Below, piece after piece: positions 22,883 to 61,278 of a stretch of 64,000 nucleotides of DNA; the first letter of the stretch is position 1, and the number at the start of each line of letters is the position of its first letter. Made by a program: the position numbers and the translations under genes. Below the pieces are notes generated by a model. That model saw only the letters and a program-made list of their open reading frames with translations. It was not told the origin of the DNA and searched no databases. Origin of the DNA: Macrostomum lignano (lineage: Eukaryota); the NCBI GenBank assembly GCA_002269645.1, contig NIVC01000662.1, forward strand, positions 1-64,000, written 5' to 3'.

Positions 22883-23193
22883 CAGTAGTTCGAAGTTGCA
22901 CCTATTTTTCTAATTTGTGTGTTTCCATACCTGTTCTGATCATCGCTGCGTCATTAATTGGCTCTGTGTTGTTGAACAGCTTGCCATTCAATGCCTTTGT
23001 TTATATAGTTACTACTCAGCCGCTACCATCTGCTCACAACTTTGAGCTTGCTGAGTTTTGTTGTGTCGCGATTGTTTCAAGTTTAATCATCAGTGCATAT
23101 ATAAAATTACAAATGATTCTTTATTTTATATTCATATTTTGCACGCAAATATGGGGGGTGATTATTGCTGATCTTAAATATTGATAGGCAGAT

Positions 23194-23218
23194 GATAGAC
23201 AGATAGACAGATAGACAG

Positions 23219-23287
<69 letters not shown>

Positions 23288-23344
23288 CAGATAGATAGAT
23301 AGATAGACAGATAGATAGATAGATAGATAGATAAATAGATAGAC

Positions 23345-23423
<79 letters not shown>

Positions 23424-23448
23424 CAGATAGATAGATAGATAGATAGAC

Positions 23449-23494
<46 letters not shown>

Positions 23495-23514
23495 ATAGAT
23501 ATACAGATAGATAG

Positions 23515-23545
<31 letters not shown>

Positions 23546-23548
23546 GAC

Positions 23549-23647
<99 letters not shown>

Positions 23648-23648
23648 C

Positions 23649-23725
<77 letters not shown>

Positions 23726-23736
23726 AATAGATAGAC

Positions 23737-23819
<83 letters not shown>

Positions 23820-23832
23820 CAGATAGATAGAC

Positions 23833-23863
<31 letters not shown>

Positions 23864-23864
23864 C

Positions 23865-23895
<31 letters not shown>

Positions 23896-23900
23896 CAGAC

Positions 23901-23947
<47 letters not shown>

Positions 23948-23990
23948 AGATAGATAAATCGATAGGATAGATGTGTATTTAGATTTATTG
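23194..23990. repeat. (GATA)n/(GACA) microsatellite, ~0.8 kb
   Basis: Long GATA run with interspersed GACA and AATA variants, ~310 bp downstream of the ANKRD13 stop. Confidence 0.98.
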
Positions 23991-38000: not shown

Positions 38001-41000
38001 TTTTTCGTCTTCCATATTTAGCTGGGGAAAAACATTTTCCCAAACTCTCGCGCGGTGACAACTCAGCTTCCCCATGGCGTTTCCTGAGCTGATGTGGTGC
38101 CCATTGTTTTAAGTCTTTTTTCTTTCATGTTTTTTGCTGCTGAATTTCTGCTGGCTACAAAAAATAAAATTAATTTCTGCTGCGAGTTAGGACTTTTGTT
38201 TGGTTGCACTTTTGTGTACCGGCTTGCTTGACATTCAACGATTTGCCTTAGCTGATGGGGATTTACCACCATTGCTGATGGGGATTCACCATTGCTGATG
38301 GGGATTTACCATTGCTGATGGGGATTTACCATTGCTGATGGGGATTTACCATTGCTGATGGGGATTTACCACCATTGATGATGGGGATTTACCATTGCTG
38401 ATGGGGATTTACCATCATTGCTGATGGGGATTTACCATTGCTGATGGGGATTTACCACCATTGCTGATGGGGATTTACCATTGCTGATGGGGATTTACCA
38501 TCATTGCTGATGGGGATTTACCATTGCTGATGGGGATTTACCACCATTGCTGATGGGGATTTACCACCATTGCTGATGGGGATTTACCACCATTGCTGAT
38601 GGGGATTTACCATTGCTGATGGGGATTTACCATCATTGCTGATGGGGATTTACCATTGCTGATGGGGATTTACCACGATTGCTGATGGGGATTTACCATT
38701 GCTGATGGGGATTTACCATCATTGCTGATGGGGATTTACCATTGCTGATGGGGATTTACCACCATTGCTGATGGGGATTTACCACCATTGCTGATGGGGA
38801 TTTACCACCATTGCTGATGGGGATTTACCACCATTGCTGATGGGGATTTACCATTGCTGATGGGGATTTACCATCATTGCTGATGGGGATTTACCATTGC
38901 TGATGGGGATTTACCACCATTGCTGATGGGGATTTACCACCATTGCTGATGGGGATTTACCATTGCTGATGGGGATTTACCATCATTGCTGATGGGGATT
39001 TACCATTGCTGATGGGGATTTACCACCATTGCTGATGGGGATTTACCACCATTGCTGATGGGGATTTACCATTGCTGATGGGGATTTACCACCATTGCTG
39101 ATGGGGATTTACCACCATTGCTGATGGGGATTTACCACCATTGCTGATGGGGATTTACCACCATTGCTGATGGGGATTTACCACCATTGCTGATGGGGAT
39201 TTACCACCATTGCTGATGGGGATTTACCACCATTGCTGATGGGGATTTACCACCATTGCTGATGGGGATTTACCACCATTGCTGATGGGGATTTACCACC
39301 ATTGCTGATGGGGATTTACCACCATTGCTGATGGGGATTTACCACCATTGCTGATGGGGATTTACCACCATTGCTGATGGGGATTTACCACCATTGCTGA
39401 TGGGGATTTACCACCATTGCTGATGGGGATTTACCACCATTGCTGATGGGGATTTACCACCATTGCTGATGAGGATTTACCATTGCTGATGGGGATTTAC
39501 CATTGCTGATGGGGATTTACCATTGCTGATGAGGATTTACCATTGCTGATGGGGATTTACCATTGCTGATGGGGATTTACCATTGCTGATTGGGATTTAC
39601 CATTGCTGATGAGGATTTACCATTGCTGATTAGGATTTACCACTCTCAAATGAGCTAGGATTTACCACTGTCAATTTGGGAACAAAGAACAAAACATGGG
39701 TCATACTGCTATCTGAGCTCAGCTTACCAACTATCGCTAGATGCTGCGGAGGTCCATAGTGACACTTTCGCACTGATGTGGAACTCCCATCGTCTACCCG
39801 GGACATATCTCCCTCCCAAGGGGCCTCTGGGGTTAACTGGGCCAACTAGAGGGGACAGATTTGAGTCGAATAGTATCCCTTGTCTACCCTACTCCCAACC
39901 TCCCCATCTCAGACCGCGGGAAGGATGCAGCAGGCCTTCTCGACTTGTGATTGATCGGATCGTTTGCTCCAGACTTTAGGAAATCGATCTGCTTTTCCTT
40001 ACTTCGTTCGTCAGTTGCTTTTTTAACTTTGCTTTCTTTAAGTAGACCAATCTTTTAACTCTTCTGCTGACTCAACCCGCTGCAGGAATCGGCCTGGCTC
40101 TGGCTGCTGCTGTCAAAGGCTACCGCTGCACCATTGTCATGCCGGAGAAGATGAGCAAGGAGAAGGTGATGCGCCACCGCCAGCCTCCCAGATCCCCAGT
40201 TGCTGGGCCAGCCTCCCAGATCCTCAGTTGCTGGACCAGCTTCCCAGATCCTCAGTTGCTGGGACAGCCTCCCAGATCCTCAGTTGCTGGGCCAGCCTCC
40301 CAGATCCTCAGTTGCTGGACCAGCCTCCCAGATCCTCAGTTGCTGGGCCAGCCTCCCAGATCCTCAGTTGCTGGACCAGCTTCCCAGATCCTCAGTTGCT
40401 GGGCCAGCCTCCCAGATCCTCAGTTGCTGGGCCACCAGCCTCCCAGATCCTCAGTTGCTGGGCCAGCCTCCCAGATCCTCAGTTGCTGGACCAGCTTCCC
40501 AGATCCCCAGTTGCTGGGCCAGCCTCCCAGATCCTCAGTTGCTGGACCAGCCTCCCAGATCCTCAGTTGCTGGGACAGCCTCCCAGATCCTCAGTTGCTG
40601 GGCCAGCCTCCCAGATCCTCAGTTGCTGGACCAGCCTCCCAGATCCTCAGTTGCTGGGCCAGCCTCCCAGATCCTCAGTTGCTGGACCAGCTTCCCAGAT
40701 CCTCAGTTGCTGGGCCAGCCTCCCAGATCCTCAGTTGCTGGGCCACCAGCCTCCCAGATCCTCAGTTGCTGGGCCAGCCTCCCAGATCCTCAGTTGCTGG
40801 ACCAGCTTCCCAGATCCCCAGTTGCTGGGCCAGCCTCCCAGATCCTCAGTTGCTGGACCAGCCTCCCAGATCCTCAGTTTCTGGACCAGCCTCCCAAATC
40901 CTCAGTTTCTGGGCCAGCCTCCCAGATCCTCAGTTGCTGGACCAGCCTCCCAGATCCTCAGTTTCTGGGCCAGCCTCCCAGATCCTCAGTTGCTGGACCA

Positions 41001-44000
41001 GCCTCCCAGATCCTCAGATGCTGGGCCAGCCTCCCAGATCCTCAGTTGCTGGGCCTGCCTCCCAGATCCTCAGTTTCTGGGCCAGCCTTCCAGATCCTCA
41101 GTTGCTGGACCAGCCTCCCAGATCCTCAGTTGCTGGGCCAGCCTCCCAGATCCTCAGTTGCTGGACCAGCCTCCCAGATCCTCAGTTGCTGGGCCAGCCT
41201 CCCAGATCCTCAGTTGCTGGGCCAGCCTCCCAGATCCTCAGTTGCTGGGCCAGCCTCCCAGATCCTCAGTTGCTTGGCCAGCCTCCCAGATCCTCAGTTG
41301 CTGGGCCAGCCTCCCAAATCCTGTTTAGGACCCTCTACTATCCTCGCGATTTTCCTAGACAGCATCTCGCCCCCTCTTATGCTGACCGTCAGGTCGACGT
41401 TCTGCGCGCCCTCGGCGCCGACATCGTCCGCACGCCGACGGCGGCCAGCTACGACAGCGCCGAGTCGCACATCGGCGTTGCCAAGCAGCTGCTGAACACC
41501 GTGGCCAATTCGCACATCCTTGATCAGTACACCAACCCCTCCAACCCGATGGCCCACTTCGACGGTGAGTTTCACGTTTTATACTGCTGGATGTCATTTG
41601 GAATTTAGAGGCTGACTATTCTACCAACCCACTCATAGTAGATTTTGTATTAATCACTCACATTCCACCTATATAATCACTCATAATTTACCTGTCAATC
41701 ACTCGTAATTCACCTGTCAATCACTCGTAATTCACCTGTCAATCACTCATAGGCCACCTGGCAATCACTCATAGTCTACCTGTCAATCAGTTACCTTTCA
41801 CCTGTCCAATCATTCACGTTCCTACTCCAGGCACAGCCGAGGAGATCCTGGAAGCGTGCTCCGGTCAGCTGGACATGGTGGTGCTTGGCGCTGGCACAGG
41901 CGGCACCCTGTGCGGAGTGGCTCGCAAGCTGAAGCAGCGCTGCCCAGACTGCCTGATCATCGGGGTTGATCCGCTGGGCTCGATACTGGCTCAGCCTGAC
42001 GAGCTGAACGCCACCAAAGTGACTGGCTACGATGTTGAGGGAATCGGGTGGGTTGGCTGCACTGAAATCATATGATCTGTTCTGATATCACTGCTAGTCT
42101 ATGGCCTGATGTCACTGTTAGTCTATGGCCTGATGTCACTGTTAGTCTATGGCCTGATATCACTGCTAGTCTATGACCTGATATCACTGCTAGTCTATGA
42201 CCTGATGTCACTGTTAGTCTATGGCCTGATATCACTGCTAGTCTATGACCTGATATCACTGCTAGTCTATGACCTGATGTCACTGTTAGTCTATGGCCTG
42301 ATATCACTGCTAGTCTATGGCCTGATATCACTGCTAGTCTATGACCTGATATCACTGTTAGTCCATGACCTGATATCACTGTTCGTCTATGACCTGATAT
42401 CACTGCTAGTCCATGACCTGATATCACTGTTAGTCCATGACCTGATATCACTGTTAGTCTATGGCCTGATATCACTGCTAGTCTATGACCTGATATCACT
42501 GTTAGTCTATGGCCTGATATCACTGCTAGTCTATGACCTGATATCACTGTTAGTCTATGGCCTGATATCACTGCTAGTCTATGACCTGATATCACTGTTA
42601 GTCTATGACCTTATATTACCCGGCAGGTACGATTTCGTCCCCACCGTGCTGGATCGGTCCCTGGTGGACCGCTGGTACAAATCGAATGACGTGGACTCGC
42701 TGCGCATGGCCCGCCGTCTGATCAGACGCGAGGGCCTCCTCTGCGGCGGCAGCAGTGGCAGCGCTTTCGATTGCGCGCTGCGCGCCGTTCGCGATTTTGG
42801 CCTCGGCGCCGGCAAGCGGGTTGTTGTGCTGCTGCCCGACTCGGTTAGAAACTACATGACCAAATTTCTCAGCGACGACTGGATGATTGAACGGGGACAC
42901 ATGCCCGATCCCGAGGTTGGCTGGCTAGTTTTACTACTAACTCTCTTAAATCAGTAGCCAGTAAAGAATGTTTTTTGCTAATTTTATTGTATTCTATTAA
43001 AGATTCTGGTAAATTTTCTGAGCTCTAATACTTACGAGTTGGAAAAATGATTTATTTTTCTGTTGAAAAAGGAAGATAAAAAGGATGACACACTTTATGA
43101 GCGTATTATTGGTGCCGGAGAAATGTACATTGTTATCAGCGCGGCAGGTAGGCAATGTACATTGTTATCAGCGCGGCAGGTAGGCAATGCACATTGTTAT
43201 CAGCGCGGCAGGTAGGCAATGTACATTGTTATCAGCGCGGCAGGTAGGCAATGTACATTGTTATCAGCGCGGCAGGTAGGCAATGTACATTGTTATCAGC
43301 GCGGCAGTTAGGCAATGTATATTGTTATCAGCGCGGCAGGTAGGCAATGTACATTGTTATCAGCGCGGCAGGTAGGCAATACATTGTAATGAAAATGCTG
43401 TAGAAAGAAGAAGCGATACCACTGTTTTGAAAGTAGCTTAATTTTCAAAGTTGAGTAATTTTCAAACAACGATTTTAATTGCTTTTTTGCTGCCCAGGAC
43501 GATCCCAGCCTGGGCCCGTCCCATACCTGGATGTCCGTCCGGGTCGGCAGCCTCGACCTCCGCGCCCCCCTGACCGTGGCGCCTGACGTGTCCGTCAGCG
43601 AAACCCTGGAGCTGTTCAACCGCGAGTCCATCGACCAGGTGCCAGTTGTTGAACGGTCAAGCGGCGCCATCGTTGGCATGGCAACGCTGAGCAACATCAC
43701 GTCGAGAATTATTCGAGGCAGCCTGGCACCCACCGACCCGGTTGGCTCGGCGGCCTTCGACAAGTTCACGAAGGTGACGCCCGACGCCAAGCTGGGCGCC
43801 GTGAGTCGGAGGCTGGACACCGACCACTTTGTGCTGGTGGTGCAGCAGCAGCGGCAGTGTGAGTTCTAGGAAGAAGTTTGTGTAGTTTGTGTAGTTTTTG
43901 GCGTAGTTAGTGTAGTTTGTGGTGTAGTTTGTGTAGTTTGTGGTGTAGTTTGTGTAGTTTGTGGTGTAATTAATGTAATTTGTGGTGTAGTTAGTGTAGT

Positions 44001-46122: not shown

Positions 46123-49100
46123 TTAGTTGCTGACCAAGGGCGGCAGCTGCTGCTTGCCCGCCGACAGCGGCCGGGTCTCCAGTTCGTTAATCTGGGTGCG
46201 CAGCTGCTGGATCAGCAGCCGCTGGGTTTCAATTGTCCGCTCCTTCTCCTCCATGTCCTTCTCCAGCATTGGATTGGACTTGTTGGACGTCACCATGGCT
46301 ACTAGTTGCTTGGCCTGGTCGTTGTTCTTCCTGTGCAGGCCGACCGCCGCCTCGAGGTCATGAATCTGGGTTCGTGACTTCTTCAGGTCGCGCCGCAGGT
46401 CGTTGATCTCCTTGATTAGCGACACGTTCTCCTGGTAGGGTGGGGAAGTTTTAATTCGTGCTATAATTTTTGGGAGTTTAGTTTTTTTAGGTGTTTTTTA
46501 AATGGGTTAAAAATTTTTTTAGAGCGACGGAGGGAGAAATTCCTAGAATCTCTCTGGACCCAACCACCTTACTCCGCCAACCACCTCACTCCGTCAATCC
46601 TCTCACTCCGCCAACCCCCTCACTCCGCCAACCACCTCACTCCGCCAACCACCTCACTCCACCAACCAACTCACTCCGCCAACCCCCTTACTCCGCCAAC
46701 CACCTCACTCCGCCAACCACCTCACTCCGCCAACCATTTCACTCCGTCAACCCTCTCATTCCGCCACGCCCACCGACCTCACACCTTCCAGAATCATCAG
46801 ACGCATCCCACTCACCTGCATGATGCGCACGTAATCAGCCCTGTGAATGTCATTCTCTTTAGCCAGCTTCTTTCGCAGCGAGGCCACGGATCTTTCAAGG
46901 TGCTCGCGCTGCCTGGCGAACTCCTTCTGTATGTCGGCGTCCATGTTGGCCTCGCTAGCCTGGTAGTTAGTGCGGGAAAGTTGTATTTAAAAATTTCTCT
47001 CTGATTATTTCATATTGAGTCCACAACTTCACTGCATCGAACTCACCATATCGTCATCACGGACGTGCTTCCTGTACATCGACATGATGCTCTCCTTCAG
47101 CTGTTTTGGCTCCTGAATGAAGTTTACGCAATTGTGCAGGTCGGTCTTGAACCGGCGCACCGCCGCCTCGACCCTGAACTTCTCGGTCTTCTCATTCTTC
47201 AAATCGTTCTCAACCGCCTTGAGCTTGTCCCTCATCTCGCTGATGTTGAGCTCCAGCTGCGTGTTCTGCTTGTGGAACCGCTCCAGCTCGGACTCCATTC
47301 CTGGATCTGCTCCTTGTAGTTCTTGATGTCCTGCTCGCGCGGCTCGATCTGCTTCTTGAGCTCCTTGATCTTGTAGTCCAGGACGAACTTGAACTTCTCC
47401 AGCTCCTGGTTCTTCTTCTTCAGATCGTAGATTCGCTTCTCCTTGTCCTGGATGGTCTCATCTCGCTCCTGGATCTCCTTCTTCAGTCCGTCGATGTCCT
47501 TCTGCAGGTTGCGGATGACGTTGTTGAGCTTCTGATTCTCCGTCTGCAGCTTCTTGATTTCGTCCTTGTGATCGTCGATCTCCTTCTGCAGCGAGGTGAA
47601 CTTCTTCTTCATGATGCCGGACTCGCTCTTCAGCTTCGTGTTGGATTCTTTCTCCTCGCGGAGCCGCTTCTCGTACTTGATCTTCGAGTCCAGAATCTCG
47701 CGGTCGGCGTCCTCCTCGATTAGCTTCTTGGTCTCCTCGTACTCCTCCGTCTGCTGGTGGATCTGGCTCTCTAGCTCCTCGATCTTCTCGTCCAGCTGCC
47801 GGATTCGCTCCTCGAATTTCTCGGTGATCTCCTCCTCGGACTTCTGGCGCGCCTCCTCCATCTCCTGCAGCTGGCGCTCGTAGTCCTCCTGCATCTTCTG
47901 CGACTTGGACTGCAGCTCCTGGTACTTCTCGTACTCCATCATCAGCTTCTGGTTGTTGGCGGCTTCCATGTCCTGCACCTCCTTGCTGTGCTTCTCCATC
48001 ACCTCCTGCAACTGTTCCTCGTGCTTGGCCTCCTCCTTGTCCTTCTCCGTCTTCAGCACTTGGTTCTTTGTCTTGAGCGATTCCATCTCCTGGATGAACT
48101 TCTCAGTGAGCTCCTTGATCTTGTCGTTATAGTTCATGTCCTTCATGCGCAGCTGGTACTCGTTGCCGATCTTCAACTCCTCCACGCGCTGGTTGAGCTC
48201 GGCGGTCAACGCGTTCTTCTCCTCCAGGTCGGACTTGGTGATGAGGATCTCCTCGGCCCAGCCAGTCTCCTTGTCGCGCTTGAGCCCGCGGCCCTCTTTG
48301 TCCGTCACCTTCCAGATTAGCACGCAGCCATCGTCGCCAACGGTGACCATGTACTCGTCGGTGCAGACCAGGCGCATCTTGTTAACGCCGCCGCTATGCG
48401 CTGCCACCTCCTGCCAGTCGGAACCGGCGCCGCCGCCAACCGAGGCCGCCGTGAAGGGGAACTTGATGGCCCGGACTGAGCCGGACTTGGTGCCGGCGAA
48501 CATCATCCGGCCGGAGTTTGACATGGCCAGCGAGGTGAACTCGGCCTCGCCGGCGTCAATGGCCGGCATCGGCTCCTCATCGGTGATCTCCTTCAGCTTG
48601 CCGTCGCTGCCTACAGCGTAGGTTGTCTTCACGTCGGCCGTGGCGGCGACGCCCGTGTAGCTGCAGGTCTTGAGCACGTGCTCGCGCAGCCGCTTGCCGG
48701 TGGCCACCTCCCACTCGTAAACGGCGCCGTCCATGCCGCAGGACACCAGCTTGCTGTCGTCGTTGGACCAAACTAAGCCTTTGATCTTGCCGTTGTGGCC
48801 TTTGAAGTTGCCGACATTTTCAAAGCTGATGGTTGAGAAGATCTGGATGATGTTGCCGTGGACGGCGGCGAACAGATGGCCACCGTTGCTGAAGGCGCAC
48901 TGCGGGGGGGAGACGTTTGGAGAGGAAATAATTGACACTATGAGATGAATCGTGTGCTCATCGCTATGAGTTTCTGAGTCTGTACTCGAGGACCACATTA
49001 GGCAGGCTCACGCGTTCAAAGTTTTATTCAATGGGACTCACCTCGCGGCAGCCGCGGATAGTGAACTCTTTGAAGGTGCGAATGTCGTCAATGAGCAGGT

Positions 49101-51188
49101 TCATCAGGCGGAGCTTGTCGCTGAATCCTACCAGCAGGAACAGGCCGGACGGGTGCAGGGCCACGCTGTAGGCCTCCTCAGCGAACTCCTTGTACAGCTC
49201 GCATTGGCTGGGTGGGTTGGGGTGGCGATTTAATACAATTTTTGCTCCTAACTTTAGCTCTGGGCCATTCTCGAGCCCCAGCTACGCGAACTCACTTGGT
49301 CTCAAAGTTCCAAATTCGAACCGAACGATCCACGGAGCAGGTGGCGACCAGCGGTTTTCGCGCGCAGACGTCCAGTCCGAGCACCTGGCTGCTGTGGAAA
49401 CTGTGCGACAGCTGCTCAAATTGAGCATAGTCACCGCCCTGGATTTGCGAAGTTTTTTTAATTGTTATACATTGCTTGTTCAACTTTTAGGCCAGAATTT
49501 TCTTCACCTGCTTCTTACCTTGCCAAGCTCTGACGAGGCCAGGGAGATCTGGTAGATTTGGCCTCGGTCAGTGGCCGCCACCAGGTTTTCCTCAGAGGGA
49601 CTGATGCTGAGCTGAATGATGATCTGCTGCTCCGAAACTGACGGATCTGCGCTAAATGGGTCTGCCGGGATCTGCGCAATAAAGATGTACGGGTTTGCCT
49701 TTGGTTTTTATGCACAAAGACTTTGTATATATTCTGGGATTGGTGGGAGTAGAGAGGAAGCCATCCCGCCCTAGACTGTACATTCTGGGGTTGACGGGAG
49801 TAAAGAGAGAGCCATCCCGCCCTAGACTGTACATTCTGGGGTTGACGGGAGTAAAGAGAAAGCCATCCCGCCCTAGACTGTACATTCTGGGGTTGACGGG
49901 AGTAAAGAGAGAGCCATCCCGCCCTAGACTGTACATTCTGGGGTTGACGGGAGTAAAGAGAGAGCCATCCCGCCCTAGACTGTACATTCTGGGGTTAACG
50001 GGGGTAAAGAGAGAGCCATCCCGCCCTGGACTGTACATTCTGGGGTTGACGGGGGTAGAGAGAAAGCCATCCCACCCTCGACTGTACATTCCAGGCTTGA
50101 TAGGGATAAGACAGAAAGCCAGCCTACATTATGGTACTTTCCGGGTAATGGAACGGGGGGTTCAGCCTTACCCTGATCTCTCTGGCCTTCTTGTAGTACT
50201 CTTTGCCGTCCTCCATGCGCTCGAACAGATGCACCCGGCCGGCGCCGCACGAGACAGCGAAGCCTTTTGAGTAGGCGGCGATGGAGTGCGCCTGGTTGGC
50301 CATCGCGGCGTTGAGATCGGACTCGCGGTCGCCGGACTCACTGGCCGACTCGGCCATGGTGAACTCGGCTCGCTGCTCGCCGTTCTCCATCAGCACCCAC
50401 TTGCCGCTGTCTGTGCCGGCAACAATTCTCTCGTCCGACACCCAGCAGTGGCTGACGAAATTCTGCGGCTCAGTTTTTGACACGGCGAACTGTTTGAGAT
50501 TGTTCTCGGAGTAGCGGTACAGCTTGAAGGTGCCGTTGCCAACAACGGACACCTGGGTGCTGTCTTGCGGGTTGAAAGCAATCTGGAAAGTTTTTTTATG
50601 GACCGAAATCAATCATTTTTTCACGTAGAAGTCTAGGCTCAATCAAGGGTGTCTGTTGACCTTCTGTGACCTCTTAATCTCTATTGGCGCACTGTGACTC
50701 ACCTGATTAACAGAAGCGTGCGGCGTCACCTGCACGTTGAGCGATTTGACAATGGCGAGCTGCTTGTTTTTCTCCCAGCTCCAGTAGACCAGGTGATAGT
50801 CCGGCTTGCCAGACTGCCCGGCCAGGTACTTTGAGTCAGGCGAGAAGGCCACGCTCATATAGTCTCCGGAGGCCACCTCGGCCGAGCTCACCGTCTTCTT
50901 CTTCTTGGTTGTCTGCACGTCGTAGACGTGAATCAGCGGCTTTTCCTCGGCTCTGGCCGCTTCGGCTACGGCGACGAATCGCCGATTGGGCGACACGGCC
51001 ATGGCGGTGATGCCGGCGCATTTCTCCGACAGCGAGATAAATCTCTGAGTCTTCTGGTCGACATTGTGCAGCACGATGCTGTTACCGCACGGATAGACCA
51101 CCGTCTGCTCGTCCACAAAGTAGATGTTCCCGGCGACTCCGGTGCGCAGGCCGAAGGCGTGCCTCAGCTGGATACCGGCGATTGACAT
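46123..51188 (-). CDS. CFAP57: Cilia- and flagella-associated protein 57 (WDR65): WD40 repeats plus long coiled coil, 8 exons, ~1221 aa after correcting a 1-nt frameshift
   Basis: Exons 51188-50703, 50582-50172, 49671-49519, 49438-49296, 49207-49042, 48899-47047, 46959-46816, 46431-46123 with GT-AG. Motifs [64 protein letters not shown] and [25 protein letters not shown]. Exon 6 is 1853 nt (one short of 618 codons) at CAG GA ATG (47299-47300). Confidence 0.93.
46558..46760. repeat. 17-bp minisatellite (CACTCCGCCAACCACCT) in CFAP57 intron 7
   Basis: About 10 imperfect copies. Confidence 0.85.
49725..50100. repeat. 51-bp minisatellite (CTAGACTGTACATTCTGGGGTTGACGGGAGTAAAGAGAGAGCCATCCCGCC) in CFAP57 intron 2
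   Basis: About 7 copies. Confidence 0.93.
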
Positions 51189-54100
51189 GGTGGCTGGTTG
51201 CCTGACTGCTTGAGCATGCATAATAATTATTATATAGGCTATTTAGAAGCAAAGACAAAGATATGCTTTATTTTTCTTAATTAAAAAATTAGAAGGATAA
51301 AAAGACACTTATAGGAATTGTCTTTTTAAATTAAAAATATTTACAAGCTTATGGCTTCTTAGACCTTGAAAATTGTGTTTTAAATCTGACTATCATTTTC
51401 ATCGATTCTGGTTAAATTCAGATTTGTTTACAAATTTAAAAAATGTCAATTTGACCTAAAATCATTAGAGCAAAGTATAAAAGTTAACCATATCATTTGA
51501 TTCAAAATCCTTCCTTCCTATATACTAAAACTTTAAACAGCTTGAAACCAATACACTAGATTTTGGCATGTGTCTGATAATCGAAAATTACCTTACAGAG
51601 TATAATTTAAAGGGCTAAAGTTGCAATATACAATCCTGTAAATGACCTGATAAGTTGAGTCTATTTTTGCACATTCAAAGTTTATTAGTCAACTCTGATT
51701 TGATTCGTGCAATAGTATTAGTTAGTTTACCAATTATATGATAATTTTATAATTTACTAACAAAAACATCAATTTATATGCTAGAACCTACAAAAAGATG
51801 CTATGTCGAAATACAAATATGAATATAGTCTAAAAAGCTCTAGTCTAATATTTTTTTAATTAAGAAGTGAAATAATTATATGCACAATAATGTAATATAC
51901 AAATATTTTGGCAGCTTTTTCCTAGTTTAAAAGTACCCAGTTTCCTAGTTTCTCCTAGTACTTCAAAAGTAGGAAGTGGGAAGGCAAGATGGATACCATA
52001 CATTTAGTTCTTCAAATACGCTCGTATATAGCTCGTTCTCGTTCAATGTTTCACTTGATTATTTTATATTGAAGCCCAAAAGGGACTCAAATGAATCTTA
52101 CTAATCTTTCAAAAGTTATATATTCGCAGCATATACGAAGCATGTTAAATAATTTGTAGTTATTATTTCGTAGGTTCAATTTTTTATTGTACTGTAGATA
52201 CTCCTGTTGTCAACAGAAACTAGCAAAAAAATTATTTTTCTCACTGAAGCTTTTATTATTAGTCTTTATTTGTTTATTTATTTTTCTTTTACAAAACCTA
52301 TAAAGATGCTTTGTTGCAAGATTAATGAGTTTTGTTATATCGTTTAAATTTTTATAAAAAGAAAACCGTGAAAGTGCAAGCAAGAGTTGTTGTTAATATT
52401 TATCGAGATAGAAAATCTATGCATGTTTTAAATTGCTTTTTTCAGCTGTGAGATCAGCGAGACAGTCAGGTTGCTTGTTGATCGACTGCTCGATTCTCTG
52501 CCTTGCATCTTTTATTGGACTTATTTGCATTGTACATGTACGAGTATAACGTTCAGCTGTACAGCTACACGTACGTCACGGACTACTAGATATTTGGGGG
52601 ATGAGGACCTAATGAGGGCTTATTCATTGAAGGCAACATCTTTTTCTGTCAAAAAATGATTAGAAAAGTTTCTAAGTACGGGGTAAAAGTTCTATATTTT
52701 AAATCTGATTGAAGACGAAAATTAGCTGGGAATCGTACCTGAATTCATTGTTGGATAATTGAGCGAGGTTTTTTCGATTTGTTGCATACATATATTTGAC
52801 ATGAATATTTTTTGTCACGTTCCAACTGGAACAAATTATTACTTGATTATCACACGCGATTAAAGAATATAAGCAAGAAATCAGGGGCACAGGGATCGAA
52901 GGGGGTTGGGGAATGTATATCCTCCCGAACAGCCTAAAAAATTTGAAGTATGTTATTCTAGTACAAGCATTTTCAATCCCTAGGGGCGTCCTATCCCCCG
53001 AGAGGAAAATTTCTGGTGGCCTAGCTAAATCCCCCAGAAGAATTAAGATTTCTGGCTACGCGCCAGCTGCAAGGATCTAGTTGATAGCTTGCTATAAATT
53101 TGAGTTTGAGTTGAATTAAGCCGCTGTATTGATCGACATTCATAAAAACGAATTAGTACAACAAGCAGAACATCAAAAGCGAAAAGCGTAATATAGAAAA
53201 ATTTAGTCGGACACAGCTGCAGCACATTAAAACAAGTTTACAGATTTAGGAAAACAAAATGCCTAATTTCCAAAAGCGATGAAGCCTGCTTTGTGCGACA
53301 CATGTACAGCTATTGCGTCTGCAGATATGATTCGAAAAGCTGTGGAAAAATCATTTTGAATGAATTTTACGGCTCATATTTATTCACAACGATTATCAAA
53401 AAGCAATTAGCTATTTTGTAATGAAATGAGCTAAAATTAAAAAGGAGCATTGTGCAACACCAATTGCAGTAGAATAAGAAATAGGTTAAATTTTCCAACG
53501 AACATTTATAGTAATAAATAATATAAACAACAGATGATGCACGGCCGCATATACAGTGTATAAATTAACGTATTGAACAAAAATAACGAAAATGTTTGTA
53601 TTGAATTGGAATTGGCAGAAGAGCAATCTGGAACCAACAACTTTACCTATAAATACAAATAGTTTTATTCAGAATTTAGAATAAGAAACTTACTTTGATT
53701 CAATTACGAGAAAATTATATTGAGTTATAACAAATTAAAAACTGACTTTTGAATGTTTTTTTCGGCTTTAATCTGTAAGCGAATCTATTTGAATGACTAA
53801 ACACTTATGTGGCGGCAAATAAAAAATAACCATTATTCATTGATCAGTACCTTGATGATTACTATTCATTAAAACACGTTTTTTTTATGTTTTATACCTA
53901 TTTTTGAGATGGGGTAAAAATGGCGAAATTTATTGGCATAAAAACTTTGTGACATTTCCTTTGCGATGATACAATTTAGCTGTTTGTGCCCTTGGTCTAC
54001 GATGTACATCATTCTCTATGTACAAAGCTGGCTTGCTTGCGTACATTTAACTGATGGCAGCCCACTCTCTCCATCCACCCAATGTACGAGAGTGGTACAA

Positions 54101-54477: not shown

Positions 54478-57400
54478 TCAGGGATAAGCAACCTGCTGCT
54501 GCCAACCAGCCGAGTAATAGGGAAGCACAGTGCCGGTAAACAGGTGCTCCTGGTGATACTGCAGGTGCTGGTGCTCATGCTGGTACTGCTGCTGCTGCTG
54601 CTGCTGAACATCTGGGAACTGCTGGTATCCGTCAGTTGCATGGCAGCTTGAGTAGCGAGCTCGCATCTGCTCATAGTACTGCTGATAGGCCTCCGCTGAA
54701 AATTGAAATTTACGTGCATAATTTTCTACAGCTAATAAATATTATTGAAGACCATTCGCACAATAAAACAGCACACTGCAGGAGACTGCAGGAGTCAGGA
54801 TCTATAGGGTATTGTTAGAGACCCAGAAACTCATGAGACCTTTGTAAATACCCTGTAGGGACCCTTGTAAATACCCTGCAGGGACCCTTGTAAATGCCCG
54901 CTAGAGATCCCTGTAAATACCCCTGCAGAGACACCCAGGCACATTTTAGAAAACTTTGTAGCTCGTAAATACCCTATAGAGACCCTTGTATCTCTTCAAC
55001 GATGGACTGCAATATACAACAGCAAGTGCAGTGGACCCCCTTAACTCTACAGCTGCAGCCTGTCAATCAGCACCTGTTCGGTGACACTCACGCGCATTAG
55101 CCGGGCAGCTGTAGGCCAGCTCCGCCCAGGACGGGTTGGCCATCCCTGTGCCCGGAGACAGCCCTGATGAGGGCGCGGCCAGAGCTGCATCCTCCCCGAA
55201 CTGATCGAGGTACGGAGCGGCATTCATGTGGATGGCCGGCTGCTCCTGCGGCTGGTACACCGAGGCCACGGCTGCCTGCATCGCTGTCATCTGGTACTCG
55301 GATGACAGACTGGCGTTGCCTGTGGAGTTTGATAGAAGGCAGGTGTGGTGGGTTGGCCTGTGCTGTATAGTATCCCTGGTGGCCAGCTGCGATTGCATCT
55401 GAGGGCACCGGGGGCTTTAGTACCAGGGACTTACACCATGGGCTTTAGCACCAGGGGCTTTAGCACCAGGGACTTTAGCACCAGGGGCTTTAGCACCAGG
55501 GGCTTTAGCACCAGGGGCTTTAGCACAAGGGGCTTTAGCACCAGGGGCTTTAGCACAAGGGGCTTTAGCACCAGGGGCTTTAGCACCAGGGGCTTTAGCA
55601 CCAGTGGCTTTAGCACCAGGGGCTTTAGCACCAGCGCTTAAATGCCATTAACCTGTGAAACAGCCTCGTGCAGAGCACATCTCTGGACTAGAGTGATCCT
55701 TACTATGCTACTGACAAGCAAACAGTAGAATGTTCAACATTTGCCGAAATCAAGTTTCATCAGCTCTCACCGGCATCGGTGCTGGAGCCTTCAAACGATT
55801 CGTTAGATTCCGTTTTCACCGCTGCCCCTTCGTTCACCTCGCCATCGTGGGGCAGGTGTTGCAGAAACTCCTGGTGGTGCTGCTCATGCTGAAGCAACTG
55901 CTGCTGCTGCTGCTGATGCTGCTGCTGCTGGCAATGGTAGAACATCTGGCGGGGCTCAAATAGTTTGCTTTCGTCTTTGAGCAAGATCTGATGCTGCTGC
56001 TGCAAGGCCAGGGTTTGCTCGCGCAGAGTTTTGTCGTTGGATTTGCGCAGGGCAATGAGCTCACACTTCTCGCAGATGCAGTTGGCGAACGGGCAGGTCT
56101 TCTTGTGGCCCTTCCACAGCTGCATCTTGTTGTGGTTGCGGCAGCGGCGGCAGTGCGGGAAGTCGCCTGCAGTTCGGGTTTCGGTTAGCCATTCACTCAA
56201 TTCACATTCTTTGCTGGTCAGCCATTCACCCAATTCACATTCTTTGCTGGTCAGCCATTCACCCAATTCACATTCTTTGCTGGTTAGCCATCACCCAATT
56301 CACATTCTTTGCTGGTCAGCCATTCACCCAATTCACATTCGTTGCTGGTTAGCTATTCACTCAATTCACATTCTTTGCTGGTCAGCAATTCACCCAATTC
56401 ACATTCTTTGCTGGTCAGCAATTCACCCAATTCACATTCTTTGCTGGTCAGCCATTCACCCAATTCACATTCTTTGCTGGTCAGCAATTCACCCAATTCA
56501 CATTTTTTGCTGGTCAGCCATTCACCCAATTCACATTCTTTGCTGGTCAGCAATTCACCCAATTCACATTCTTTGCTGGTTAGCCATTCACCCAATTCAC
56601 ATTCTTTGCTGGTTAGCCATTCACTCAATTCACATTCTTTGCTGGTTAGCCATTCACCCAATTCACATCCTTTGCTGGTCAGCCATTCACCCAATTCACA
56701 TTCTTTGCTGGTTAGCCATTCACCCAATTCACATCCTTTGCTGGTCAGCAATTCACCCAATTCACATTCGTTGCTGGTTAGCTATTCACTCAATTCACAT
56801 TCTTTGCTGGTCAGCAATTCACCCAATTCACATTCTTTGCTGGTCAGCAATTCACCCAATTCACATTCTTTGCTGGTCAGCCATTCACCCAATTCACATT
56901 CTTTGCTGGTCAGCAATTCACCCAATTCACATTTTTTGCTGGTCAGCCATTCACCCAATTCACATTCTTTGCTGGTCAGCAATTCACCCAATTCACATTT
57001 TTTGCTGGTCAGCCATTCACCCAATTCACATTCTTTGCTGGTCAGCAATTCACCCAATTCACATTCTTTGCTGGTTAGCCATTCACCCAATTCACATTCT
57101 TTGCTGGTTAGCCATTCACTCAATTCACATTCTTTGCTGGTTAGCCATTCACCCAATTCACATCCTTTGCTGGTCAGCCATTCACCCAATTCACATTCTT
57201 TGCTGGTTAGCCATTCACCCAATTCACATCCTTTGCTGGTCAGCCATTCACCCAATTCACATTCTTTGCTGGTTAGCCATTCACCCAATTCACATTCTTT
57301 GCTGGTTAGCCATTCACCCAATTCACATTCTTTGCTGGTCAGCCATTCACCCAATTCACATTCTTTGCTGGTTAGCCATTCACCCAATTCACATCCTTTG

Positions 57401-60400
57401 CTGGTTAGCCATTCACCCAATTCACATCCTTTGCTGGTCAGCCATTCACCCAATTCACATTCCTGGCTTAGTCAGCCAATCATCCAATTCACATTCTGTG
57501 ATGGGCAGTTATTCACCCAATCCATAGTGAATGACGGTCTTTCATTCACCCATTTACAACGAATACTCACTCACCAATTAAAACCACTTTGCCTTTGGCT
57601 TGCTCTAAAATGTCTTCTGAGCGCTGTTTCCTGTAATTGCTAATCTGCTTGGCAACAATTTGCCTGCCGTGATCGACCAGCATGCACTTGGGGCAGTTGC
57701 AGTCCTTGTACTGGCATTGACGCTTGTGGCCTTTGACGCTGATGCAGATGCCGTGGCTCTTGCATTTGCGGCAGAAGTACTGCTTCCGGTTGGCGGCTCC
57801 CGCGACACTGGATGCGGCACTGCTGCCGGACTTCTTGCTGGATGAGGAAAACGAGGATGCTGTGCTGATTGGTTGATGGTGGTTGCAATAATCAATGAAT
57901 AACCAACTATCAAGCTTGTATGTTGGGGTGATTCTCATCAATAGCACTGATTCTCATCAATAGCACTGATTCTCCTCAATAGCACTGATTCTCATCAATA
58001 GCACTGATTCTCCTCAATAGCACTGATTCTCATCAATAGCACTGATTCTCATCAATAGCACTGATTCTCATCAACAGCACTGATTCTCCTCAATAGCACT
58101 GATTCTCATCGATAGCACTGATTCTCATCAACAGCACTGATTCTCATCAATAGCACTGATTCTCATCAATAGCACTGATTCTCATCAATAGCATTGATTC
58201 TTATCAACAGCACTGATTCTCATCAACAGCACTGATTCTTATCAACAGCACTGATTCTTATCAACAGCACTGATTCTCATCAACAGCACTGATTCTCATC
58301 AATAGCACTGATTCTCATCAACAGCACTGATTCTCATCAATAGCACTGATTCTCATCAACAGCACTGATTCTCATCAATAGCACTGATTCTCATCAACAG
58401 CACTGATTCGATTCTCATCAATAGCACTGATTCTCATCAACAGCACTGATTCTCATCAACAGCACTGATTCTCATCAACAGCACTGATTCTCATCAATAG
58501 CACTGATTCTCATCAATAGCACTGATTCTCATCAATAGCACTGTTTATCAACAAATACACATTCAATTAATCATAATTTTACTTTTTTTTAAAAAATAGC
58601 TTCTGCTTTGAGATTTCATTAAAGCTTGAAACTGCTTGGAATGAAACGCAATGCCATCAGGATAAGCCATCCCAGGCACGCTACAGCACAACTCTCTCTG
58701 TTCATATTTCCTGTAAAAGGGAAACTTAATTGTTTTAAACCTGTGGAGCTCGCACGTGTCAGTCAGCAGTTTAAAACTGCGAGCTCCAATTTGTCTGACC
58801 GTAAGGATTAACTCTGTTTTTGCAACAGCAAATTCGATTGTTTGGGCTTTGATATTGATGTTGGTCTTTCATAAATCTCTCTGTGATCTCAGCAATCCGC
58901 TTTGACCCCGAGGGCACGCCTGGCCGTTTTCTGGGGGATCATTCTGCAGGGAAAGGGGAACAGTCAGCCAGTGCGCCCCCAAGCCCAGCTGTTGAGAGGA
59001 TATTTTCCCTTAGACAGGTGTCTCAGTGTCAGAGCATAAAAGTGAACTCTATAATCAGATTAACATCTATGTAGTTATTTATACAATAGTGTTCTGTCTA
59101 CCATCATAGAACCCTATAGCGTGTATATCCTGCAGTGAAAAAGCATGTCGGCAAAAAATTAATGATTTATTGCCCTTGTGAGTCTAAATTTACAGTATGG
59201 TTTTCGGGTGCAGTGACTTCTATGGCCATCCATTGTCACACGCTAACATGCAGGCTATTTAATAACTTTGAGACTGGTCACTCATTTTTATGCTGAATAG
59301 ACAAATTTTCCCGAATCACAGCAATACATTTTACTCTAGACTCCTAGAGCAGGGGTCGGGCAATTACAGCCTACGAAGCCTCCCTATCCGGCCCTCGGGT
59401 CCTTTGAAACTTCACAATAGCAATCGCAATAGAAAGTGTGTCTCTTCTCAGCTCTCTTACCTCCTCTCTCTTCTAATCTCCTGTCTCTTATTTCCTATGC
59501 TCTTTTCTCTCTCCTCTATTTCATCTCTATTCTCGTATGGCATTAGCCAGGTTCTTTATCTGGCCCTTGAGGTACAATAGAAAAAGTTCAAAGGGGGGCC
59601 GTAGCCCAGTGGTCTAGGGCGGCGCTCTGATTTACCAGCGACTCAGGCTCGATTCCCAGTGCAGTCACCATTAATTTGCGGATAAATTGGAATCTCGGCT
59701 TGGCTCTGCTCGTGCAATTAACGGCCTTGAGGCCCAGCCCCAAGACACAGTGAAGTGTACATGATAAATAAAGTTAGGGCCGCTGTACACCCCTGTGTGT
59801 GCGTGTGACTGCGTACGTATCCGCGCGCTTGTGTGCCTGCTCAGGGGAGTCGGCGGAATGGGCAGTAATGCCTCTCGCCGGTTTTGTGACAATGTCCTTA
59901 AAGTTTATGTATGAAAACCGTGACAAAAAGATAAAAAACTGCATTATGAATCATAAATCATGCGCGACAGGAAACCGAGGTTTGGCTGGGGGCTTGTCAG
60001 AAAAGCAAAGAAACAAATACAGGTGCAACAATTCCCGTTTTTCCTCACATTAATGACCCGCAGGCATGCAGGGCGACATTCGATATTCATCTTCCAACCT
60101 GGCCAGCCACATTGTTGGGGAAATAACATGCTAAATTGGCGACGCAGGTAAGACGCTTTGACCACTTTGCTGAGCAATTTCTTTTAGTTTCTGGCGACAT
60201 TCAATACTTTGCAGCCATATAGAGTTCAGGTTTTGTGCCTATACCTTGCAGTATGGCTTGTTATGATTCCTGATTTACCCTCCCACCATAATTATAGCAG
60301 TGCCTGTGTGCAGCATTTCCCCGATTATATACAATGAATCAGGAGTGAGATGCATTGTTAAAGTACAGTGGCTTGACTTTGTAATGGCGGTGCTGTTTGG

Positions 60401-61278
60401 ACAGTTTCTACGGGCAGGGGCGGATGAAAGGGCGGATAGCTCAAGGGTTTATCCTATGGGTAGGGGCGGATGAAAGGGCGGATACCTCAAGGGTTTCCTA
60501 TGGGTAAGGGCGGATGAAAGGGCGGATACCTCAAGGGTTTCCTATGGGTAGGGGCGGATGAAAGGGCGGATAAATCAAGGGTTTCCTATGGGTAGGGGCG
60601 GATGAAAGGGCGGATAAATCAAGGGTTTCCTATGGGTAGGGGCGGATGAAAGGGCGGATACCTCAAGGGTTTCCTATGGGTAGGGGCGGATGAAAGGGCG
60701 GATACCTCAAGGGTTTCCCATGGTAGGGGCGGATAGCTCAAGGGTTTCCCATGGTAGGGGCGGATAGCTCAAGAGTTTCCCATGGTAGGGGCGGATCGCT
60801 CAAGATGTTTCCCATGGTAGGGGCGGATAGCTCAAGAGTTTCCCATGATAGGGGCGGATAGCTCAAGGGTTTCCCATGGTAGGGGCGGATAGCTCAAGAG
60901 TTTCCCATGGTAGGGGCGGATCGCTCAAGATGTTTCCCATGGTAGGGGCGGATAGCTCAAGGGTTTCCCATGGTAGGGGCGGATAGCTCAAGAGTTTCCC
61001 ATGGTAGGGGCGGATAGCTCAAGAGTTTCCCATGGTAGGGGCGGATAGCTCAAGAGTTTCCCATGGTAGGGGCGGATAGCTCAAGAGTTTCCCATGGTAG
61101 GGGCGGATCGCTCAAGGGTTTCCCATGGTAGGGGCGGATCGCTCAAGAGTTTCCCATGGTATAGACTAGCCAGCATCAGGCGGAGACAACGCTGGAAGAC
61201 TTACCCAACGAGATGGTTGGTGGCAATGAAGCTTCTCGAATCGGCGGCTCCCAACGATTTGAAACCGGTTTCCTCCAT
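54478..61278 (-). CDS. DMRT: Doublesex/mab-3-related (DMRT/dmd) transcription factor with two tandem DM zinc-finger domains and a Q/Y/H-rich C-terminus, 5 exons, ~401 aa
   Basis: Exons 61278-61205 (MEETGFKS..., donor GG|GTAAGT, phase 2), 57864-57575 (DM1), 56166-55771 (DM2), 55319-55092 and 54695-54478 sum to 1206 nt in frame. Both domains fit C-x2-C-x2-H-x8-H-x3-C-x4-C-x-C-x2-C. The exon 4 start is uncertain (55319 or 55398) and the symbol is family-level only. Confidence 0.88.
54835..54990. repeat. Degenerate ~23-bp array (GACCCTTGTAAATACCCTG) in DMRT intron 4
   Basis: About 5-6 diverged copies. Confidence 0.65.
55407..55637. repeat. 15-bp minisatellite (GGGGCTTTAGCACCA) in DMRT intron 3
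   Basis: About 14 copies, homogeneous centre and degenerate left edge. Confidence 0.95.
56183..57495. repeat. 33-bp minisatellite (AGCCATTCACCCAATTCACATTCTTTGCTGGTC) filling DMRT intron 2, between the two DM exons
   Basis: About 39 copies ending ~16 nt from the acceptor. Confidence 0.97.
57933..58545. repeat. 19-bp minisatellite (AAYAGCACTGATTCTCATC) near the 3' end of DMRT intron 1
   Basis: About 32 copies. Confidence 0.96.
59350..59588 (+). mobile_element. Probable hAT (Charlie-like) non-autonomous element, right end interrupted by a SINE
   Basis: Starts CAGGGGTCGGGCAATTACAGCC...ATCCGGCCC, resembling Charlie-type termini, and ends GGCCCTTGAGG...AAAAAGTT just before the SINE. The internal part has an inverted homolog at ~63295-63420. 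Confidence 0.45.
59593..59903 (+). mobile_element. tRNA-derived SINE, family A copy 2 (in DMRT intron 1)
   Basis: GGGGGGCCGTAGCCCAGTGGTCTAGG...GGCTCGATTCCCAGTGC head and a body homologous to 1786-2128. Confidence 0.8.
60412..61160. repeat. Composite G-rich minisatellite: 44-bp unit switching to a 31-bp unit (GGTAGGGGCGGATAGCTCAAGAGTTTCCCAT), 5' end of DMRT intron 1
   Basis: About 7 copies of the 44-mer, then about 14 copies of the 31-mer; ends ~45 nt from the donor at 61204. Confidence 0.93.

Follow-up and report, generated by a model that had tools for sequence, protein, structure and literature searches.

A Macrostomum lignano gene with two different DM domains, related to planarian dmd-1

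In the first 64,000 nucleotides of contig NIVC01000662.1 of the flatworm Macrostomum lignano (GenBank assembly GCA_002269645.1; this whole stretch is called the window here), a first-pass annotation made from the letters alone had placed a doublesex/mab-3 (DM) gene with two DM domains on separate exons. Such a locus raises the question of whether the two domains are joined in one product and, if so, to which two-domain proteins that product is related and what each domain may contribute to DNA binding. The locus proved to be one intact protein-coding gene, for a transcription factor that carries two dissimilar DM modules. The gene lies on the minus strand, with five coding exons between 61278 and 54478, and its product of 392 amino acids (P0001) was found by protein search to be 100% identical to GenBank PAA69735.1/PAA78849.1 ('hypothetical protein BOX15_Mlig015551g3', also g1; Mlig015551); UniRef labels the protein 'DM domain-containing protein'. 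The Mlig015551 gene model is therefore already public and uncharacterised, and its family is known through dmd-1, with members that databases already annotate as DM-domain proteins. Taken jointly, the data make it likely that this is a dmd-1-type flatworm gene with two DM domains, whose protein would bind DNA as a built-in heterodimer and would serve a male reproductive role.

Two DM domains in one product

Both domains were recognised in the Pfam search that the first-pass annotation had proposed as a check. The open reading frame (ORF) of exon 2 (57567-57947) matched PF00751 with 53 bits (E=3.2e-14, profile 1-47/47) and that of exon 3 (55760-56266) with 52 bits (E=6.3e-14, profile 3-41/47); as the gathering threshold is 27 bits, the two matches are far beyond chance. 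All eight zinc ligands are present in DM domain 1 (DM1; C47, C50, H53, H62, C66, C71, C73 and C76 of the 392-residue protein), and all eight in DM domain 2 (DM2; C118, C121, H124, H133, C137, C142, C144 and C147), with the same spacing, C-x2-C-x2-H-x8-H-x3-C-x4-C-x-C-x2-C. DM1 comprises the zinc module CRKCKSHGICISVKGHKRQCQYKDCNCPKC and then the helix MLVDHGRQIVAKQISNYRKQRSEDILEQ, its ORF reading YFCRKCKSHG...CPKC and then MLVDHGRQIVAKQISNYRKQ. DM2 comprises the zinc module CRRCRNHNKMQLWKGHKKTCPFANCICEKC and then the tail ELIALRKSNDKTLRE, which runs to 56018 and is followed by a Q/H-rich stretch, its ORF reading PHCRRCRNHN...CEKC and then ELIALRKSNDKTLREQ.

The modules differ in what follows the zinc ligands. 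DM1 aligned with human DMRT1 (PDB 4YJ0) without a gap through the recognition helix ...RQIVAKQISNYRKQRSEDI (E=1.8e-11), whereas DM2 aligned with 4YJ0 and with Drosophila DSX (1LPV) in the zinc module only, the 4YJ0 helix being unmatched beyond 'AER'. The first-pass annotation had described a canonical-looking tail on DM1 and, on DM2, a full set of zinc ligands with a divergent helix; these alignments bear out both descriptions, and the peptide strings that it quoted are correct. It had also seen no DMA domain (PF03474; DMRT3/4/5, Dmrt93B/99B), and none was found by Pfam in full-length P0001 or in exons 4 and 5, DM being the only domain detected in the full-length protein. Q, A and H abound in the C-terminal 227 residues, where Pfam finds no domain.

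The two DM exons join in frame. Exon 2 (57575-57837, 263 nucleotides) carries DM1, with the Pfam match at residues 43-89 (57785-57645) and the first Cys codon starting from 57773, and exon 3 (55771-56166, 396 nucleotides) carries DM2, with the Pfam match at 56158-56042 and the first Cys codon starting from 56152. They are separated by intron 2 (56167-57574, 1408 nucleotides, phase 1, GT..AG), with the donor ATTG/GTGAGT after 57575 and the acceptor CTGCAG/ before 56166, so that the phase 1 junction G/GC encodes Gly113. When P0001 was searched with tblastn and the GT/AG sites near the aligned blocks were enumerated, exactly one combination gave the 392-residue protein back. The separate-exon layout of the first-pass annotation is thus upheld; of its span, 55771-57864, the start is the exact last base of the DM2 exon and the end lies 27 nucleotides past the true acceptor at 57837.

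Placement on separate exons might also mean that the DM exons are used alternatively, as in the spider Dsx2 gene, so that the main products would each have a single DM domain. Skipping of exon 3 (phase 1-1) would keep the frame and leave an intact DM1-only protein of 260 amino acids; in addition, Parasteatoda Dsx2 splits its two DM domains between isoforms (PMC6604209), and dmd-1 of the planarian Schmidtea (Smed-dmd-1) has four splice forms (PMC3674237). However, all four of those splice forms, cloned as complementary DNA (cDNA) by rapid amplification of cDNA ends, contain both domains, their variation being confined to the region downstream. Furthermore, skipping of exon 2 would break the frame, and exon 3 has no start codon of its own for DM2: no in-frame ATG precedes the zinc module, the first being the Met inside NKMQLW. 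The domains are also joined in the deposited protein records (PAA69735.1/PAA78849.1, PAA67585.1 and a 319-residue MetaClust sequence), and a single exon holds both in two other flatworms, the Cichlidogyrus homologue being intronless and Taenia crassiceps having both domains within one exon. We therefore regard alternative use of the DM exons as very improbable. Since both domains share one exon in Taenia and Cichlidogyrus, the separate-exon layout is a feature of Macrostomum and not of the family; on the same ground, an ancestral origin of the intron that parts the domains was rejected.

The remaining exons complete the gene model. Exon 1 (61205-61278, 74 nucleotides; ATG at 61278-61276) encodes MEETGFKSLGAADSRSFIATNHLV and the first two bases of Gly25 and ends at the donor GG/GTAAGT; exon 3 ends at the donor GCCG/GTGAGA; exon 4 (55092-55319, 228 nucleotides, NASLSSEYQ...CPANA) and the Q-rich exon 5 (54478-54695, 218 nucleotides including the stop TGA at 54480-54478, PEAYQQYYEQ...QQQVAYP) are both without a Pfam domain. 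All four introns have canonical splice sites, and the reading frame is intact. Each intron contains a minisatellite array: intron 1 (57838-61204, 3367 nucleotides) has a 19-base-pair (bp) unit repeated 33 times at 57929-58554 and 44- and 31-bp arrays at 60404-61161; intron 2 is almost wholly filled by ~40.6 copies of a 33-bp unit (56183-57521); intron 3 (55320-55770, 451 nucleotides) has 15.5 copies of a 15-bp unit at 55405-55634; and intron 4 (54696-55091, 396 nucleotides) has a 23-bp array at 54837-54922.

Three near-identical copies of Mlig015551 (g1 to g3) are present in the genome, the window gene agreeing with contig NIVC01000662.1 at every base. The coding sequence of the second genomic copy (NIVC01001296.1) differs from that of the window gene by four synonymous and no non-synonymous changes; its intron 1 is 805 nucleotides longer (4172 nucleotides), its intron 2 (979 nucleotides; L003 8510-9488) is shorter by exactly 13 units (429 nucleotides), and its introns 3 and 4 are of the same length. 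In the third copy, g2 (PAA67585.1), the only differences are in polyQ length and at two substituted residues, both of which lie outside the DM domains. The copy number, together with the arrays in every intron and the more than 25 arrays in the window, would fit a duplicate that is decaying or wrongly assembled, in a genome rich in repeats and partly polyploid, and that yields no functional protein. We give this possibility next to no weight, because the frame is uninterrupted, the four introns all have canonical splice sites, the copies differ only synonymously or outside the DM domains, and the zinc ligands and family-invariant residues are all present.

The flatworm family and other two-domain proteins

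A profile built from six two-domain proteins was searched against 1.84 billion representatives. It retrieved 2731 DM proteins, including 33 clusters with E<1e-30 that mostly matched in one stretch across both domains; P0001 itself matched the six-member DM1-DM2 profile with 311 bits in one stretch and has all of the family-invariant residues. The order within the family is fixed, namely a DM1 class domain (CRKCraHG...pVk.HKRnCPy..C.C..C.LV..GR.iVA.QIalYRdQ, with the signature form CRKC[KR]xHG ... GRx[IV]VA[KRQ]QIalYRdQ), a variable linker and a DM2 class domain (CRRCRNHg....WKGHKK.CP.r.C.C..C.LI..RK.nEK.LRe, opening GPHCRRCRNH). The members that carry an organism name are all flatworms, many others coming from Logan/ENA assemblies: Macrostomum, Schmidtea, the monogeneans Cichlidogyrus and Protopolystoma, the cestodes Schistocephalus, Taenia, Hymenolepis, Hydatigera and Mesocestoides, and the schistosomatid Trichobilharzia. 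The DM2 tail follows a family-specific, conserved and predicted helical pattern, LI..RK.nEK.LRe; L149, I150, R153, K154, K158 and R161 are invariant in the aligned Macrostomum, planarian, monogenean, cestode and trematode sequences and, judging from this alignment, the tail is under constraint.

Among studied genes, the closest relative of the window gene appears from sequence comparison to be planarian dmd-1, with one-to-one orthology left unsettled by the tree. Smed-Dmd-1 splice form 1 (AGL61623) is 46% identical to the Macrostomum protein over the 134-residue DM1-DM2 block (129 bits). A second M. lignano family member (A0A1I8FPH8/A0A1I8I6F9) scored 97 bits against Smed-Dmd-1, with 37% identity, making the window gene the better dmd-1 candidate of the two. 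Smed-Dmd-1 (AGL61623-AGL61626; Chong et al. 2013, PMC3674237) and Dr-dmd-1 of Dugesia ryukyuensis (PMC12654950) have the same two modules in the same order, the tails of Smed-Dmd-1 being GREIVARQIRLYRNQ (DM1 class) and MRKTNEKSYRE (DM2 class), and the linker, counted between the final Cys of DM1 and the initial Cys of DM2, is short in both Smed-Dmd-1 (32 residues) and Macrostomum (41 residues). The planarian host, like Macrostomum, is a simultaneous hermaphrodite. The two proteins differ in that similarity outside the DM region is undetectable, and the genes in that Macrostomum has the intron between the domains and that the planarian cDNA isoforms diverge just after 'NEKSY', where the Macrostomum exon runs on. 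A 341-residue protein (P0032), proposed on its length as Smed-Dmd-1, was rejected as an ENA contig protein, the true Smed isoforms being AGL61623-AGL61626.

The same DM1 and DM2 classes occur in the neodermatan two-domain proteins (Taenia crassiceps 'dmd-3', P0019; Schistocephalus VDL95340.1; Trichobilharzia CAH8857378.1; Cichlidogyrus KAL3318115.1), which are 59-64% identical to the Macrostomum protein over the two domain cores and have a nearly identical DM2 tail (RKSNEKNLRE against RKSNDKTLRE in Macrostomum) but longer linkers, of 43-158 residues. Two subtypes of the DM2 tail, RKSNEK and RKDTEK, are found in the parasite lineages, suggesting duplication; Schistosoma Sm_dmd-1/-2 and Clonorchis dmrt-1a/b have been named (PMC3674237). 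Planarian and neodermatan homologues diverge right after the 'NEK.(L/Y)' of the DM2 tail (P0180 against P0164; P0003, P0161, P0162 and P0163), and Smed splice form 3 and several Logan-derived predictions read on as 'SK...' after NEK. Divergence at this point suggests that an intron is conserved there and gives read-through products; in Macrostomum the exon is uninterrupted. The second M. lignano two-DM paralogue (P0035/P0036; A0A1I8I6F9/A0A1I8FPH8) carries a fusion to a universal-stress-protein (Usp) domain in its UniProt gene model, which is probably a gene-model fusion or an error of older annotation, and one version of it has a damaged first zinc site, CRKVPAHG.

Two adjacent DM domains, one with a canonical and one with a divergent tail, are likewise found in nematode MAB-3/DMD-3 ('group 3' DMRTs; bioRxiv 10.64898/2026.01.01.697290), and MAB-3 has a role in male development. 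Nematode proteins named MAB-3 or 'male abnormal 3' were among our matches (Bursaphelenchus P0063 and Aphelenchoides P0070; also, by name only, Toxocara P0197). The first nematode domain (DM-a; CQRCLNH...) has the divergent tail mVE.RR.LNn.Ls, also RRQLNN, and the second (DM-b; CARCsAHG...) the canonical tail LVe.RR.LMA.QIkLRRdQ. This order, which rests on P0063, P0070 and Caenorhabditis relatives, C. elegans MAB-3 itself not being among the named sequences, is the reverse of that in Macrostomum, as the first-pass annotation had noted. Nematode DM-b also has the spacing H-x4-C, with an extra residue, whereas both Macrostomum domains have H-x3-C.

Relationships among the domains were examined with 249 distinct DM domains, 100 bootstrap neighbour-joining trees and identity matrices between classes. 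Flatworm DM1 and DM2 never formed a joint clade (0/100 bootstraps) and are 31% identical overall and 7% identical in the 20-residue tail, arguing against a recent tandem duplication. The exact clades of flatworm DM2 with nematode DM-a and of flatworm DM1 with nematode DM-b were also absent from all 100 bootstraps; because a strict clade is a harsh demand on 249 short sequences, weight was given to best-Jaccard values and the class identity matrices. In these, identities between flatworm and nematode classes were no higher than to generic DM domains, save for the canonical tail shared by DM1 and DM-b (47% identity); the tails of flatworm DM2 and nematode DM-a are 14% identical. A per-domain phylogeny, which the first-pass annotation had suggested, has set the two flatworm domains apart, and the domain-core tree did not sort out subfamilies or orthology. 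A shared origin with the nematode two-domain genes is unsupported by these comparisons, in which the sequences are too short to be decisive, and the flatworm layout probably arose independently of the nematode one.

Two-domain proteins are also known in arthropods, including malacostracan iDmrt1/iDMY (PMC10252143, PMC12154352), which we compared by architecture only, and spider Dmrt_like2 (PMC6604209). In the chelicerate proteins (mite Tetranychus P0045 and spider Araneus P0040; 'DMRT A1/A2'), both tails are canonical, and in the Clunio-type proteins (P0168, P0052 and P0165), whose sole named member is that of the dipteran Clunio marinus (CLUMA_CG008542, P0168), the tails are ..RQ.FIA.EIA.HR and ..RR.IMAKQIKDYR. 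None of the arthropod two-DM proteins seen has the flatworm DM2 tail. The Clunio-type, mite and spider proteins indicate that tandem DM domains occur in several unrelated lineages. A 2026 survey described adjacent DM domains as specific to nematodes and not common to the DMRT genes of other invertebrates (bioRxiv 10.64898/2026.01.01.697290), a statement contradicted by the two DM domains of flatworm, malacostracan, spider, mite and Clunio-type proteins; in the dmd-1 literature we found no discussion of the two-DM architecture. Tentatively, and with somewhat less than even confidence, we suggest that flatworm DM2 is a distinct old DM subclass with a re-specialised helix, and that the tandem chain is a convergent mirror image of MAB-3, forming a covalent heterodimer on an asymmetric site.

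Putative DNA binding and biological role

In DMRT1 (4YJ0) and DSX (1LPV), as here, an intertwined CCHC/HCCC zinc module precedes a helix, but each chain has a single DM domain, and separate protomers assemble on DNA; DSX also has a C-terminal dimerisation domain, which the Pfam scan did not detect in the Macrostomum protein. In DMRT1, the helices of neighbouring protomers lie side by side in one major groove. The Macrostomum protein would instead bind DNA as a built-in heterodimer, in which DM1 would place its DMRT1-like recognition helix in the major groove, and DM2 would add a canonical, basic zinc module (the minor-groove-binding part in DMRT1) and a conserved amphipathic basic helix that may either read a second, different half-site or pack beside the DM1 helix. 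The outcome would be an asymmetric composite DNA site. Yi and Zarkower are said to have reported in 1999 that MAB-3 requires both of its domains for binding to an asymmetric site.

A structure was predicted with AlphaFold2 for residues 39-177 (a 139-residue construct) from a 12-sequence alignment and without DNA. The model (predicted local distance difference test score 87; predicted template modelling score, pTM, 0.74) has a helix of ~32 residues after each zinc module, at construct residues 36-67 (after DM1) and 107-138 (after DM2), with a short connector of lower confidence. In a Foldseek search of the PDB, the top match, and the sole meaningful one, was the DSX DM domain 1LPV (target-normalised template modelling score 0.73); the remaining matches listed were helical hairpins, e.g. 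prefoldin and EsxA, suggesting that the model packs the two helices together.

The main rival to the built-in heterodimer is that DM2 does not read sequence at all, but is a zinc-stabilised scaffold whose helix contacts protein (itself, a partner DMRT or a co-factor) or that lends non-specific minor-groove/phosphate affinity, with specificity coming from DM1 alone. This would fit the low identity of the DM2 tail to that of DM1 and to other DM tail classes, the end of its Pfam match at profile position 41/47, a pattern (LI..RK.nEK.LRe, with hydrophobic residues every 3-4 positions) that reads as an amphipathic helix, and the pTM and lower Foldseek hairpins, which suggest that the two long helices pack together. 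However, of the two zinc modules, that of DM2 is closer to the canonical form (CRRCRNH, KGHKK), and the conserved tail is mostly basic (R153, K154, K158, R161), as expected of a helix that faces DNA. In addition, DM2 retains Arg at the positions aligned with both R80 and R111 of DMRT1, which lie in the first zinc finger and the recognition helix, respectively, and have been linked to DNA contact (PMC6855215). The DMRT1 numbering was deduced in this analysis, the first Cys as C76 being the sole fit to R80 and R111; R80 then falls on the Arg of C-R-N-H and R111 on the first Arg of ERQR. On balance, we consider it unlikely that DM2 serves only as a scaffold.

For a built-in heterodimer with a male reproductive role, the biological side comes from the planarian relatives. 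Schmidtea dmd-1, a male-specific regulator, is needed for male germ cells and male organs (PMC3674237). Male-specific expression is known for the Schmidtea and Dugesia genes, and RNA interference of dmd-1 in these planarians eliminated the testes and male accessory organs but not the ovaries; Sm_dmd-1 is male-enriched in schistosomes (PMC3674237, PMC12654950). By homology with Smed-dmd-1 and Dr-dmd-1, the likeliest role of the Macrostomum gene would be specifying and maintaining the testis niche and the male copulatory organs in a simultaneous hermaphrodite. The first-pass annotation had proposed a sexual-development regulator, a candidacy that the homology to Schmidtea Dmd-1 strengthens.

Several observations weigh against this combined interpretation. 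Gly82 of DM1 aligns with R111 of human DMRT1, a family-invariant Arg standing one residue later, and a Lys occupies the position aligned with R80; the R111G variant of human DMRT1 has been reported with testicular dysgenesis (PMC6855215). DM1 is thus not fully canonical and, because of the Gly at the R111-aligned position, may not bind exactly as DMRT1 does. The DM2 tail is at most 15% identical to every other DM tail class, including recognition helices that contact DNA. As for the model, 4YJ0 was not among the Foldseek matches listed, and the packing of the helices may be an artefact of a DNA-free prediction. The neighbour-joining tree, built on ~100 aligned positions of the domain cores, did not separate subfamilies, and M. 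lignano has at least one further member. Planarian dmd-1 is also expressed in neurons (PMC3674237), so that a non-gonadal role is possible, and we found nothing relevant in the literature on Mlig015551 or on Macrostomum DM-domain/doublesex genes.

Surroundings of the gene and significance

More than 25 tandem arrays, whose units measure 15-51 bp and recur up to ~64 times, are spread over the window (1-64000), for example at 32921-34750 (36 bp, 51 copies), 36458-37908 (42 bp, 34.5 copies) and 38251-39643 (23 bp, 64 copies), and an (AGAT)196 microsatellite lies at 23190-23972. Many of the arrays yield long spurious ORFs in several frames. A large gene for a WD40/EML-like beta-propeller with a coiled coil (47232-51221, minus strand) follows closely downstream of the DM gene and shares its strand; the position of this large gene is kept in both genomic copies (L003 14442-15177; L004 14073-14801). 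Exons of a pyridoxal-phosphate-dependent enzyme lie at 40139-42957 (plus strand; a weak PALP match of 30.6 bits, below the threshold of 35) and are flanked by 28-bp and 24-bp arrays open in the same frame, so that ORFs run from repeat into enzyme. Other matches were to the Ribosomal_S8e family (5446-5874, minus strand), which we take to resemble the ribosome-biogenesis protein NSA2; to an electron-transfer-flavoprotein domain (8687-9526, minus strand), whose ORF continues into a 21-bp array; to a helix-turn-helix remnant of a Mos1-type transposase (12376-13107, plus strand); and to an ankyrin/ANKRD13-like exon (19026-19784, plus strand).

For annotation, three 'hypothetical protein' records can be read as a DM transcription factor of the dmd-1 family. 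DM-domain factors are the one class of regulator used for sexual development across animals, and dmd-1 is the key male-identity gene of hermaphroditic planarians. Sex allocation is studied in Macrostomum lignano, a simultaneous hermaphrodite that is amenable to genetic work and branches outside the lineages of planarians and parasites; a gene of the dmd-1 type in this species would offer a handle on whether male-organ control by the family is ancestral to rhabditophoran flatworms. In addition, a DMRT1-like module paired with a different conserved helix would be a natural experiment in composite DNA sites that mirrors MAB-3 and, if the chain is indeed a convergent linked heterodimer, the transparent and transgenic-ready Macrostomum could be used to test how oligomeric DNA recognition by DM domains evolved.

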